The position numbers and the translations under genes were made by a program. Positions 15,324 through 21,028 of a stretch of DNA of 64,000 nucleotides are shown here, one piece after another; within the stretch, counting starts at the first letter, position 1, and each line of letters begins with the position of its first letter. A model generated the notes under the pieces. That model was not told the DNA's origin. It saw nothing but the letters and a program-made list of their open reading frames with translations, and did not search any database. The stretch covers positions 310,001-374,000 of the forward strand of contig JAPMXV010000043.1 in the NCBI GenBank assembly GCA_026936335.1. Direction: 5' to 3'. The DNA is from Mantamonas sphyraenae STR306 (Eukaryota; Protista; CRuMs).

Positions 15324-18114
15324 TCATTGGCGTCCACCCACACCGCTGCCTGCGTCGGTGCTTGCCACCACGCCGCTGGCACTGGCCACGGTGGTCACCT
15401 TGCCAAACTGCGCCTCGTTGGCCGGGTACATGGCATCGATGAGGTCCCCGTAGCGCTGCTGCACAATGCGTCGCTTCATCTTGAGGGTGGGTGTGATTTC
15501 ACCGTCCTCCACGGAAAAGTCCTTGGGCAACAGGCGGAACTGCTTCAGCTGCTCGTACTTGGCCAGCTCCTGGTTGGTGCGCTTAATCACATCCTCCACG
15601 TACGTCTTGACTGCCTCCTCCTTGATGAACGACTCCAGACCTTTGAAGGGCAGACCCAGCCTGCCCGCAAGCGCCTCCGCCTGCTCCGGATCCAGCGTGA
15701 TCAGCGCCACCAGATACTTGCGCTGGTCGCCAATGACACAGGCCTGCGAGATGACAGGATCCAACTTGAGCTTGCCTTCGATGTTCTGCGGCGCCACGTT
15801 CTTGCCACCGGCAGTGACGATGATGTCCTTCAGGCGATCGGTGATCTTCAGGTAGTTCTCGTCCGTCCAGGTGCCCACGTCGCCCGTGTGCAGGTATCCG
15901 GCGGCGTCCACCGTCTCGGCCGTCTTTTCCTCGTTCTTGTAGTAGCCCAGAAAGACGTTGGGGCCTCGGCAGAGGATCTCGCCGTTCTTCGGGTCCAAAC
16001 GCACCTCCACACCGGGCAACGCGGTGCCCACGGTGCCCCCTCGGATGCCGTTGATCGGGTTGGCACTCAGCACACCCGTGGACTCTGTCTGGCCGTACAC
16101 CTCGCGGATGTCCAACCCCATGGCGCCAAAAAAGTTGGCAATCTCACCGGCCAGCGGCGCAGCACCGCTGATCAGCGTTTCGCATCGGTCCAACCCCAAC
16201 GCAGCACGGATCTTGCTGGCCAGAAGTGCGTCAAACAGGGCCCAACGGAAGGCCAGCCAGCCTGTGGGCAGCTGGCCGTTGTTGCGCAGGTCACGCACCT
16301 CTGCGCCGGCCTCCAAGGTCCAGTCGATCAGCTTGCGCTTGATGCCTGTGGCCAGCGCAAACTTGCTCTGCACACCGTCGTAGAACTTCTCCCACAGACG
16401 GGGCACACACAGGAGCACGGTGGGGCGCACCTCGGTGATGTAGTCCTTGACAGCCTTGATGTCGGCAAACTTGACGGTGTTGCCCAGACGGATGGCCACC
16501 AGTTCGCCCTGCAGCCGTTCCGCAATGTGACACAGGGGCAGGAAGGAGAGCGAGATGAGGCCTCCCACGCCGCCCATCATGTCACCCAGGGTGCTTGCCA
16601 TAAACATCAGGTTCTTGTGCGTGTACATGGCTCCCTTGGGCTTGCCTGTGGTGCCACTGGTGTACACCATCATGCAAAACGTGTCCGGCGTCACACTGCG
16701 TGCCATCTTCTCCACCGTGTTGCGCTTCTGTTCGTAGATGTCGTCGCCGGACGTCAGAAAGTCGTCCCAGCCCAGCACGTCATCCGGCAGGTCGTCTCCA
16801 GGCTCCAAACACACCACCAGACTCAGTGCCTTGCCATCTTCATCGCGATCACGCCATCCATCGGTCTTTGCCAGCTGGGCGGCGTTTTCCACAATCAACA
16901 CCTTGGTGTCGCTGTGTTCCACCACATACTGCACGTTTTCGGGCGTCTCGTTGGGGTAGATGCCCACTCCAACACCTCCCAAGCACATGGCTGCCAGGTC
17001 GCAGTACAGCCACTCGGGTCGGTTGCTGCTCAGCACACACACCTTGTCCCCGGGCTCAAACTCAAACGCCTGCAGCGAGCACGCCACACGCGACACCCAC
17101 TCGCCATACTCCATCCACGTGATGTCGTTCCACGTGTCTATGGCACACGCATGGTGTGAGTGATCTCATGGGGTGGCAGTTGGGCCCACGGCGCGGTAAA
17201 GGGCACGCGACACAGAAATGGGGAAATGAAATGCAAACGCCGCGCCAAAACAGGGAAGCGCGTTTGGATGGGTTTCCTCCATCACGTACTGTTCTTCTGC
17301 TTGATGCTGAGTGCTGTCTCCTTGAGACCCAAGTCGTGCACCTGGCGGAAGAACACCTGCAAGATGGTCTTTTCCTGGGTGGCAAGCACAGACTTGGAGG
17401 CCACTGGGGGGGTGAGGGAAAATTGGGGTGTCAGCGAGACGGTGTTCGGGCCCGTATTGCGGCTCACAGGGAGACGGAAGGCAGGAAGCAAATGGGTGAG
17501 GGGTCAGCATGGCAACGTACTGGATCGCTCCTTGGCGAGGAGGGGCGTACGCACGTCTTCAACGTCGATGGCGGCGTCGCCAAGTTGGCGCCAACGATTG
17601 GGCTGAGCACAGAAGAGGAAGAACTGGGCCAGGGCGGCGGCGTAGGACCACACAAACAGCACAAGGGTGGTGGCAAGGGCAGCGGCAGCCTGGCTGTTGG
17701 CCAGCTTGGCGGAGAGGAAGGCAATGGAGCCGACAGTGGTGAAAAGGACGGGCAGCAAGCTGAACGACTGGGCGCCCGTGTACGCGACAATGAGAATGAC
17801 GGCGCGCACAATGGACAGAAGCTGCGGGAGGAAGGGGTCGAGGCAAGCACACACATGGGTGGGTGGGATGATGGAGGGTCGTGTCAGCATGGTTGTGGGA
17901 GGGCGAGCATGTGCAGTGGAGCAGTGCGTACCAAAACGTCTGCGTTCGACGTGGCAAACGAGTACTCGTCAACCTGGGTCCGCAGATACCCGGACAGCTC
18001 TTGGTTCCATCCAACAATCACAAACACAATTAAGGACACAATGACATCGCACAGGGACACAAAGCCCCACACCCATCGACCCTGCTGGGCCATGGATTCT
18101 TTTTGAGCTGCCAT
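15324..18114 (-). CDS. MENTAL (MLN64/STARD3 N-terminal) domain fused to long-chain acyl-CoA synthetase (ANL/AMP-binding), ~803 aa
   Basis: Exons 18114-17932, 17821-17521, 17403-17290 and 17137-15324 join in frame via GT-AG introns. ACSL motifs YTSGTTGKPKG, SFLPLCHIAER, YGQTE, LHTGDVG, RLKDIIVTAGGKNVAP, TPTLKMKR. The N-terminal 4-TM region matches the MENTAL pattern. ACSL identity is near certain; the fusion is inferred. Confidence 0.75.
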
Positions 18115-18567
18115 GTTCGCTCGCAAAGAAGAGTTGGCGAAATCGACGCCGGGGCTGACCGAACGGGATGGACCCAATGAATGCAAATGCTCGTTGCGAT
18201 TCTTCCCTCTGCGTGGGCATGTGTGAAGGTCGGTGAAAACCGTGGTAGGGACAGGAATGTCCCCGGGGGGGGGGGGGGGGGAAGGCAACGAGAATCGACG
18301 CACGAAGGACCTTGCATGACCACGTCAGCTCTATGACCACCCGATTATGTGCAGGGCCGGGAAACGGCAGCACTATTGGAATGGAACACGTCGAGTTGGA
18401 CGCACTGTGAAGCAAATGGTCTGCTGAAAACCTTTGATCCAATTCCCCGATCCTGGACAGCGAGTCGAGCACACAGCCACCTCCTACATGCGCGTTCTTG
18501 CTCCTGGGCTGGTTGTTGGGTCGATTGTATGATGCAGAATTCATTGGGGTCTAGCTTTCAATGGGTT

Positions 18568-19028
18568 TCATTGGCTGCTTGAGGAAGACGCAGACGCAGC
18601 AGAAATGGAGGAGGAAGAGGAGGAGACAGAGACGGGTGTGCTGTCGTCGTTTGCAAGAGTGGCGTCGTCGACAGAGGGAGGGCTGGGATCGTGGTCGATG
18701 ATGTCTCGTGTGGGCCCATCGAGACCCCGCTCGTCGACCGGCCGGGGAACACCGTCACGAGGCAACCATCGTCCATCCTGAAACACAAGGCCGTGCTTGT
18801 CACCGTATTCTTTCATGAGAGTACGCACACTGAGAGGGCGCATGTCGGTCCACTCCTTCTCGATGTAGTCAAGGCAGTCGTCTTTGGTACCTCTCACGCC
18901 AACCTCCTTCCACCCCGATGGGATGCCGTCCCCCACCATTCACCCCAAATGGAGTATTGCAACTCGTCGTTGATCACCACTGTAAACTCCTGGTGCTCGT
19001 CCGGGTTGTATTCGTCGTCACTATCCAT
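18568..19028 (-). CDS. MbtH-like protein with acidic/Ser-rich C-terminal extension (1-nt frameshift at G5 run)
   Basis: FTVVINDELQYSIW in one frame and IPSGWKEVGVRGTKDDCLDYIEKEWTDMRPLSVR in the next match the MbtH signature NxExQxSxWP..PxGW..L..I..WTDMRP. One extra G at 18930-18934 restores a 153-aa ORF. Confidence 0.85.
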
Positions 19029-19378
19029 CTCGGCCGCGTCTCGTTTGCCAAACTTGGGCTCCGCTGCGCACCATCCTCATTCCCTTGCCTTGCCCTCCCT
19101 TGATGGTCGTTCATACGCCCTGGCATGTGCCTATGCATGCACAGCTGCTGTGGAGGAGACTGCGCCAAGAAGTGTCTCCCCGACCATGGGTGGTTGCAGC
19201 AACCTTCAGCGGTGTGCTCGACAATTTTCAGGCGTGTGGGAGATTCAGTCGGAATGGGTACATGTGCATAGTGTGTGGCATTTGTGCGCCATCCACACAC
19301 CCTGTTGTCAACCACCAGTGATGCCAACATGGGCGTGAGTGAGGGGCGCCGGAAGGACCAATCCTTCCGTGGACAAAG

Positions 19379-21028
19379 ATGAGCACCGCCAAGTCGTTGG
19401 ACGACAAGGCCATTTGGGAGGATGACGAGTCGGACGTGGATCTGTCGGAGTTGGAGAAGCTGACGGTGGACGAGATTGAGGCTCGCAGCCGGGCTCTGGA
19501 CAACGAGATCAAGGTGATGCGCAGCAGCGAAACCAGCTACTCGCACGACATTAAGGAGCTGCAGGCCCAGCTGGCTGAGAACAACTCCAAGATTAAGCTC
19601 AATCGCCAGCTGCCGTATCTTGTGTCCAATATTGTGGAGGTGAGTGGGAGTGTGAGTGGGAGGAAAGAGGGAACCAGGAGTTGGATGCTCACACGCCAGC
19701 GCCGGGGGCGGAATTGCCAACAGATTCTCGACCTGGACGACGAGGATGAGGAGGAGGACGGCGATGCAGTGGAGCTCACAGCACAGATCAAGGAGAAGTG
19801 CACGGTGATCAAGACATCCACGCGACAGGTAGGTTGTGGCATGTGGAGGAGCATGGCCGGAAAGGGAAGGGCGAGAGGCACATTTTGGCGGGATCGACCC
19901 ACTCACACACACACTCATGGTGCGGCGTTTGTGTCCACACAGACCATCTTCCTGCCCGTGGTGGGCCTTGTGGATGCCGACAAGCTGCGTCCGGGTGACC
20001 TCGTGGGCGTCAACAAGGACAGCTACCTGGTGCTGGACACCCTGCCGGCCGAGTGCGTTTGGAAGCGTTTTCCCCTCTTCCGGCCCCATTGCTTTTGAGA
20101 TGCCAAACGTGCTGACACCCCTGGGACGACCATTGTGGACACGCACACGCACACACATTGCACAACCCACGGCACACGCACACACGCACCCAACCACACA
20201 ACCACACAGGTTCGACCCGCGTGTCAAGGCCATGGAGTGGATGAGAAGCCGACGGAGACGTTCAACGACATTGGCGGGGCGGACAAGCAGATCACAGAAC
20301 TGATGGAGGCAATTGTGCTGCCCATCGAGCAGGCAGACCGGTTTGCGGCCGTGGGCATCAAACCGCCCAAGGGCTGTCTGATGTACGGACCTCCGGGCAC
20401 GGGCAAGACGCTGCTTGCGCGTGCGTGTGCGGCACGCACCGAGTCCACGTTCCTGAAGCTGGCCGGCCCGCAGCTGGTGCAGATGTACATTGGCGACGGC
20501 GCACGAATGGTGCGGGACGCCTTTGCGCTGGCCAAGGAGAAGGCGCCGGCCATCATTTTTATCGACGAGATCGACGCGGTGGGCACGAAGCGATTCGACT
20601 CGGACAAGAGCGGAGACCGAGAGGTGCAGCGTACAATGCTGGAGCTGCTCAATCAACTCGATGGCTTCTCCTCCCACGAGGCCATCAAGGTCATTGCGGC
20701 CACCAACCGCATCGACATCCTGGACCCTGCCCTGTTGCGTTCGGGCCGTCTGGACCGCAAGATTGAGTTTCCGCTGCCGAATGAGGACGCACGCGCACAG
20801 ATCATGCGCATCCACTCGCGCAACATGTCTGTGGACAAGAATGTCAACTATGAGGAGCTGGCACGTTGCACAGAGGACTTTAACGGCGCTCAGCTCAAGG
20901 CCGTCTGTGTCGAAGCCGGCATGCTTGCCCTGCGTCGTGGCGGCGTCAAGCTCAACCACGAGGACTTTATGGATGGCATTGCCGCCGTGCAGGCCAAGAA
21001 GAAGGCTTCGCTGCAGTACTATGCGTGA
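19379..21028 (+). CDS. PSMC3: 26S proteasome AAA-ATPase Rpt5 (subunit 6A)
   Basis: [18 protein letters not shown]|[33 protein letters not shown]-terminal LQYYA; three introns (~19640-19723, ~19829-19943, ~20052-20209). Confidence 0.97.

Follow-up and report, generated by a model that had tools for sequence, protein, structure and literature searches.

A nuclear gene for an MbtH-like protein in the flagellate Mantamonas sphyraenae and a giant nonribosomal peptide synthetase as its candidate partner

MbtH-like proteins (MLPs) are regarded as a bacterial speciality, and Mantamonas is a deep-branching flagellate (CRuMs). A 64,000-nucleotide stretch of the M. sphyraenae STR306 genome (contig JAPMXV010000043.1, positions 310,001 to 374,000; called the window here, with coordinates counted from its first letter) holds a minus-strand locus at 18568 to 19028 that looks like an MLP gene. 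The locus raises the question of whether a genuine MLP is encoded in a eukaryotic nucleus and, if so, where the gene came from, whether it is intact and which enzyme it might serve. A review describes MLPs as absent from fungal nonribosomal peptide synthetase (NRPS) systems (PMC8788816). No eukaryotic MLP was reported in the part of the literature that we covered, which is not proof that none exists.

The published data for STR306 comprise PacBio, Illumina paired-end, Illumina mate-pair, and poly-A RNA sequences, and the FALCON assembly spans 25.06 Mb in 78 contigs (longest, 751,365 bp; GC content, 59.19%) (PMC10492846). The organism is diploid (PMC10492846). We aligned the contigs of four public runs from the same study over positions 17000 to 20500. 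Two of the DNA data sets, X1 and X2, are here taken to be two Illumina libraries of STR306, so that differences between them would be heterozygous sites resolved differently.

Two overlapping minus-strand open reading frame (ORF) pieces cover the locus, one at 18894 to 19028 (44 amino acids) and one at 18568 to 18939 (123 amino acids). Against the Pfam profile PF03621, whose gathering score is 27 bits, both pieces scored just over the threshold: the 44-residue piece at 28.0 bits over profile positions 7 to 27 and the 123-residue piece at 27.6 bits over positions 31 to 52 of 53. The two halves are thus consecutive stretches of one MbtH domain. This agrees with the first-pass annotation of the window, which had read the locus as an MbtH signature split by a frameshift at a G5 run; the frame changes inside 18930 to 18934. 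With one G added there, the ORF becomes a single exon of 153 codons plus stop on the minus strand, running from an ATG at 19028 to 19026 to a stop at 18570 to 18568, and it is supported by the ORFs, the Pfam matches, the Illumina contigs, and a translation without internal stop. An in-frame stop at 19077 to 19079 lies upstream of this ATG. Database and profile searches were run with the two ORF pieces separately; the alignment, the tree, and the effects of single-nucleotide differences were worked out on the version of the gene with six letters in the run.

The MbtH domain proper occupies 18823 to 18985 on the minus strand (approximately residues 15 to 69) and carries VxxN-x-E-x-Q-x-S-I-W, PSGW, and WTDMRPLS. 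It was delimited by Pfam, by alignment to bacterial MLPs, by matches in the PDB, and by a published motif. The C-terminal half matches solved MLPs, such as PA2412 with an E value of 2e-11 (PDB). A six-frame PF03621 scan of the 25.06-Mb genome found this to be the only real MbtH locus. A second hit, at C45:202142-202228 (E value, 0.033), was rejected as a chance match: it falls in another reading frame of a gene resembling a gamma-tubulin complex component, as the frame-1 translation shows, and it lacks WTDMRP. Taken together, these data show that 18568 to 19028 encodes a genuine MbtH-like protein, far beyond what chance would produce.

We compared the corrected translation with the motif VxxNxExQxSLWP-x5-PxGW-x12-L-x6-WTDxRPxSL, which is found in more than 85% of 133 MLPs (PMC7593251). 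The Mantamonas protein contains all elements of this motif but two: the WP pair is WG, and seven rather than five residues precede PxGW, so that the sequence reads S-I-W-G, seven residues, and PSGW. Both the substitution and the two-residue insertion had been proposed from the uncorrected sequence, and both were confirmed in the corrected translation. Of the 113 MbtH domains found in the top 150 of 839 database matches, 108 have a loop of six residues and 3 a loop of eight, and a single one has a glycine after the first tryptophan. The WG and the longer loop are therefore a deviation inside the natural range of the family, rare in bacteria, and do not exclude the protein from it. Trp28, Trp40, and Trp60 are all present along with WTDMRPLS, and the C-half columns among them are invariant in 12 aligned sequences. 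The Ser23-Leu24 pair of TxtH and SlgN1 touches the adenylation (A) domain, and its mutation harms function (PMC7593251 and a review); the Ser-Ile pair of the Mantamonas protein aligns with it.

Beyond the domain, the protein continues into a C-terminal extension of 84 residues (70 to 153; 18571 to 18822, minus strand) that has a high content of Asp, Pro, and Ser and terminates in a Ser/Ala run. An extension of about 85 residues with a Ser-rich character had been noted previously, and the corrected frame bears this out. It brings the protein to 153 amino acids, compared with approximately 70 for a stand-alone MLP. No Pfam or NCBIfam family matched outside the MbtH part of the 153-residue protein, and neither a word-based search nor the top 150 of 839 matches of an exhaustive search gave a database protein matching the tail. 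The tail is probably disordered.

The gene sits between two genes with introns. Upstream and divergent from it lies RPT5, encoding 26S proteasome subunit 6A (19379 to 21028, plus strand; PDB match with an E value of 1e-138), whose GT..AG introns at approximately 19638 to 19721, 19825 to 19938, and 20053 to 20209 are seen in spliced RNA contigs. The spacer of 350 bp (19029 to 19378) runs from the MbtH ATG (19028, minus) to the RPT5 ATG (19379, plus), and the RPT5 RNA contigs start near 19380 to 19429. On the other side lies a long-chain acyl-CoA synthetase gene (15324 to 18054, minus strand), identified by the Pfam domains AMP-binding and AMP-binding_C_3 and by an RNA contig. Its introns at 17138 to 17289, 17404 to 17520, and 17822 to 17931 have CT..AC ends on the plus strand, i.e., GT..AG on the minus strand, and their spliced joints appear in the RNA contigs. 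The first-pass annotation had placed the gene between these two intron-containing neighbors, and the spliced contigs confirm the introns on both sides.

All of the MbtH relatives that we found are bacterial or metagenomic. The closest are MLPs of approximately 70 residues with 61 to 71% identity over the C-terminal half, and the best matches in named genomes come from Acidobacteriota, Pseudomonadota, Actinomycetota, Chloroflexota, and others. A tree (92 rows by 82 columns) was built from 80 named bacterial MLPs, 11 metagenomic ones, and the Mantamonas sequence, and in it the last forms a long branch with no supported sister. Its highest identity to the bacterial MLPs in the tree is 56% over the domain. 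No orthologue carrying the tail appeared in the word-based search or among the best 150 of the 839 exhaustive-search matches, in which the top scores went to bacterial tandem-MbtH proteins. An orthologue from Mantamonas plastica did not surface among the best 150 of 839 matches either, though the database includes proteins from the M. plastica transcriptome.

The tandem proteins have architectures of their own. The database proteins P0007 to P0017, P0025, and P0028 include bacterial tandems of two MbtH units behind a signal-peptide-like N terminus. The same set also includes proteins of 483 to 723 residues in which several MbtH units are joined by charged, coiled-coil-like linkers and followed by a C-terminal segment resembling a phage tail-collar domain. 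Neither architecture fits a classical cytosolic NRPS helper.

Codon usage had been described as host-like, and this part of the first-pass annotation did not hold up. The third-position GC content (GC3) is 0.66 in the MbtH gene and 0.72 in host genes. On one common scale, the codon adaptation index is 0.57 for the MbtH gene, 0.59 to 0.81 for host genes, and 0.64 ± 0.13 for bacterial MbtH genes. Codon use thus does not discriminate host-like from bacterial for this gene, and with values of this kind we set aside codon usage and GC3 as a sign of amelioration. Horizontal acquisition from bacteria is the economical reading of the sequence relationships.

A plausible NRPS client is present in the genome. 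The genome contains 19 matches to condensation domains, and 17 of them lie in one stretch of contig C54. A genome-wide look for NRPS and A-domain genes, a check that the first-pass annotation had pointed to, thus turned up a bacterial-type NRPS of about 13 modules. The giant gene spans approximately 49 kb on the plus strand (C54:71712-120449, loci L024 to L028) and has the architecture A-T-(C-A-T)n, with a fatty acyl-AMP ligase (FAAL)-like starter and a T domain followed by about 13 tandem C-A-T modules. The 13 modules are 3.57 kb each; compared with the first module, 12 are at 98.5 to 99.5% DNA identity and one is at 95.6%. Three modules (start positions 84168, 101964, and 116149) differ in one segment of the A domain. 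The starter is nearest to FAAL families, and the A domains of the modules are amino-acid adenylation domains. The A domain has its closest relatives among bacterial NRPSs (30 to 37% identity), together with one Mortierella protein. Eukaryotic genes border the locus on both sides: CDC5/Cef1 lies upstream, and downstream are genes for a cobalamin adenosyltransferase, an F-box protein, and a WD40 protein. We found no report of an NRPS in Mantamonas in the literature covered, a partial sample that does not amount to proof.

The reading frame of the NRPS switches between overlapping ORFs, so that the assembly contains many frame breaks. In the three standard modules that we checked (starting at 73281, 77034, and 91261), the A-domain match ends at the same profile position, beside a (GT)n/G run. 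Because the breaks recur at the same spot next to this run, they suggest systematic, unpolished indel errors in repeats that are about 99% identical.

The MbtH gene (contig C43) and the NRPS (C54) belong to the same genome and are unlinked. We inspected two close bacterial relatives of the NRPS for comparison; an MbtH gene is present in the cluster of one, and none lies within 10 kb in the other. The NRPS A domain matches solved A domains of both the MLP-dependent and the MLP-independent kind, and to our knowledge sequence gives no prediction of whether an A domain needs an MLP. The C54 gene, the one large NRPS of this genome, is the likely client of the Mantamonas MLP. Two other proteins are weak alternative candidates. 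One is the product of a 1991-residue ORF at C29:155012-160987 (plus strand), in which two AMP-binding domains precede AIR9-type Ig domains; it has no carrier or condensation domain. The other is a stand-alone protein of 678 residues with a condensation-type domain (C4:143137-145173, plus strand).

The domain identity, a frame intact in both alleles, the nuclear eukaryotic context, and the presence of an NRPS are established. From these we think it probable that the locus is a horizontally acquired nuclear gene of bacterial ancestry, intact and partnering the C54 NRPS. Binding, activation, expression, and any role of the tail are what we infer on top of that. As in the bacterial complexes, the MLP domain would bind 1:1 to the large N-terminal subdomain of the NRPS A domains, away from the active site. 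Contacts would be made through the backbone of Ser26-Ile27 and through a cleft formed by Trp28 and Trp40, and the putative interface residues are conserved in the Mantamonas protein. Once bound, the MLP would be predicted to keep the A domains soluble and to boost adenylation. A more far-reaching version, which we offer tentatively and rate at somewhat under even chances, is that Mantamonas kept the bacterial NRPS-MbtH dependency after both genes entered the nucleus. This would make the protein the first working eukaryotic MLP, one that a horizontally acquired lipopeptide megasynthetase requires in trans for its 13 amino-acid A domains, and the eukaryote-specific, Ser-rich acidic tail might add a layer such as phosphoregulation or localization.

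Whether the gene is in use bears on the strongest of the competing explanations. In the single poly-A RNA data set, no RNA contig covers the gene, with zero contig depth from 18638 to 19339, a result that cannot prove silence since it rests on contigs; both neighbors were assembled from the same data, at depths of 88 and, for RPT5, approximately 1276. The coding sequence shows five allelic differences, of which three are synonymous and two are conservative nonsynonymous changes (G33A and D51E). The resulting pN/pS of 0.19 is not significantly below 1 (binomial P = 0.08), and the evidence for selection on the gene is at most suggestive. The allelic diversity of the coding sequence is several-fold under that of the 230 nucleotides beyond the stop. 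The tail alone has one synonymous difference, compared with many in the 230 nucleotides downstream.

As a separate observation, the intergenic DNA immediately beyond the MbtH stop (18340 to 18591) is strongly heterozygous, whereas the adjoining coding sequence varies far less. Each of its two alleles is represented by a contig at about half depth, and the two contigs differ by many single-nucleotide changes and small indels.

These data could also describe an intact but idle relic, i.e., a gene that arrived with or for the NRPS and is still open in both alleles but has ceased to be expressed or needed and is drifting toward loss. The gap in RNA contigs between two assembled neighbors fits such a relic, as do the long terminal branch in the tree, the lost proline with its altered loop, and a pN/pS that is not significantly below 1. 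However, the 153-codon frame has been kept in both alleles, including the low-complexity Ser run, where neutrality predicts indels. The lower diversity of the coding sequence relative to the adjacent noncoding DNA also speaks against drift, and the three tryptophans and the WTDMRP core are all intact. Secondary-metabolite genes are, moreover, often silent in culture. We judge the relic to be unlikely, with a chance that is modest but real. The first-pass annotation had called the gene a domesticated horizontal transfer, and this claim survives in part. The transfer is supported by the bacterial nearest relatives (at most 56% identity over the domain), the nuclear locus, and the in-frame alleles, whereas "domesticated" implies use, for which the missing RNA contig and the P value of 0.08 do not speak.

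A second possibility is that the MbtH domain has been repurposed, serving another adenylate-forming enzyme (the downstream synthetase or the C29 protein) or a non-NRPS partner, with the new tail giving it a new function. The MbtH gene lies approximately 500 bp upstream of the synthetase, a member of the ANL superfamily, on the same strand. It is not linked to the NRPS, and its 84-residue tail is shared with no bacterial MLP found among the best 150 of 839 matches. Against this, the known clients of MLPs, according to reviews, are amino-acid-activating A domains and not fatty acyl-CoA synthetases. The synthetase also forms a separate transcript: its spliced RNA contig of 4055 nucleotides has an assembled 5' end at 18054, does not reach into the MbtH gene, and differs from it at least 40-fold in contig depth. 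Because the synthetase mRNA contig begins at 18054, an MbtH-synthetase fusion transcript was rejected as well. No MbtH or NRPS genes lie next to the synthetase's closest homologues in bacteria, and on the same grounds we discarded a co-transfer of the MbtH gene with the neighboring synthetase. The C29 protein lacks carrier and condensation domains. Repurposing appears doubtful, with a small chance of being correct.

The synthetase has a history of its own. Its portion from 15324 to 17114 (minus strand) is nearest to a Mantamonas plastica protein (67% identity) and then to proteins of approximately 600 residues on marine bacterial contigs (52 to 57%), and eukaryotic relatives, such as that of Galdieria (43 to 45%), rank behind the marine bacterial ones. 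Judging from these matches, the synthetase gene, now with three introns, may be of bacterial origin.

The frame break itself could mean that the gene is a true pseudogene, with the C5 run real and the gene broken in the sequenced strain. At 18930 to 18934 (minus-strand gene), the assembly has C5 on the plus strand, i.e., G5 in the coding sense, and in the Illumina contigs the run is six letters long and takes two allelic forms. An extra C behind 18929, present in both X1 and X2 at full contig depth, brings the gene back into frame. X1 alone has an additional change of C to G at 18931, so that the alleles are either all C or carry one G. Both six-letter alleles translate to 153 residues without a stop, with either Gly or Ala at residue 33. 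Because the organism is diploid and two in-frame alleles are seen in the contigs of both Illumina libraries, there is no room for a third, five-letter allele. A tiny intron in place of the frameshift was ruled out since no more than about 14 nucleotides separate the two Pfam halves.

RPT5 offered an internal control for this locus. The assembly lacks one base at 20235/20236 in an RPT5 exon, 1.3 kb from the MbtH gene. The missing base is G in the RNA contigs (X3, depth of approximately 1276) and A in the Illumina DNA contigs of X1 and X2, a synonymous heterozygous site, and adding it restores the conserved RPT5 sequence. As a base missing from this essential gene is contradicted by both RNA and DNA contigs, we read the frame break in the MbtH gene as an assembly error too. 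The deposited assembly was polished with Pilon using Illumina reads and still contains C5, which would favor a real break. At both MbtH and RPT5, however, a heterozygous site coincides with the missing base, and this heterozygosity may explain, we believe, why short-read polishing failed. The C5 frame break is thus very probably an error of the PacBio-based assembly, leaving a broken gene only a slim chance. Gene models resting on this assembly may also break in RPT5 at 20235 to 20236. For genome projects, the lesson is one of caution, in that leftover one-base errors can make bacterially acquired genes appear broken.

[quoted passage not shown] The MbtH gene is thus continuous with intron-bearing host genes in independent data.

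The preferred reading, a transferred and intact nuclear MLP gene with the C54 NRPS as its partner, has several consequences. The Mantamonas protein departs from its family in three ways, namely its residence in a eukaryotic nucleus, the 84-residue tail, and the rare loop variant. An intact MLP and a bacterial-type 13-module NRPS in one genome would provide a natural test of whether MLP dependence travels with transferred NRPSs. The outcome would also be of practical use to those who wish to produce bacterial NRPSs in eukaryotic hosts. The published proteome dropped proteins whose best hit was a GTDB prokaryote with at least 50% identity and coverage (PMC10492846), and bacterially acquired genes may have been filtered from downstream analyses of it.

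Lastly, we compared the Mantamonas protein with known systems. It belongs to the same Pfam family as the bacterial stand-alone MLPs, among them Mycobacterium tuberculosis MbtH (Rv2377c), Pseudomonas aeruginosa PA2412, Escherichia coli YbdZ, and Streptomyces scabiei TxtH. Shared with these is a core consisting of N-x-E-x-Q-x-S-[IL]-W, PxGW, 12 residues, L, 6 residues, and WTDxRPxS, including the three tryptophans and the Ser-[Leu/Ile] pair of the A-domain interface, and in each case there is an NRPS in the same genome. Unlike the stand-alone MLPs, the Mantamonas gene is nuclear, lies between intron-bearing genes, and stands outside any NRPS cluster. Its product has 153 rather than approximately 70 residues owing to the low-complexity tail of 84, with Gly in place of Pro and a loop that is two residues longer.

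Bacterial MbtH fusions show that the MbtH unit tolerates extensions, as it does in Mantamonas. These include SlgN1 with its N-terminal MLP domain, the proteins P0023 and P0026 of approximately 185 residues with a conserved C-terminal domain, and the secreted tandem-MbtH proteins P0008 and P0010. P0023 is similar to the Mantamonas protein in its eight-residue loop, the absence of the proline, and the string ELQYSIW. However, what the bacterial fusions add is a folded, conserved domain or another MbtH unit, whereas the Mantamonas tail is of low complexity and matches none of these additions. The P0023 gene also stands in a bacterial context with CusF adjoining, in contrast to the nuclear setting of the Mantamonas gene.

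For the synthetase side of the pair, the closest parallel comes from early-diverging fungi, in which Wurlitzer et al. in 2021 reportedly described bacterial-like NRPSs (Mortierella alpina). Like these, the Mantamonas NRPS is a eukaryotic gene with domains resembling bacterial rather than fungal ones. The Mantamonas genome differs from the M. alpina system in that it pairs its NRPS with an MLP gene.
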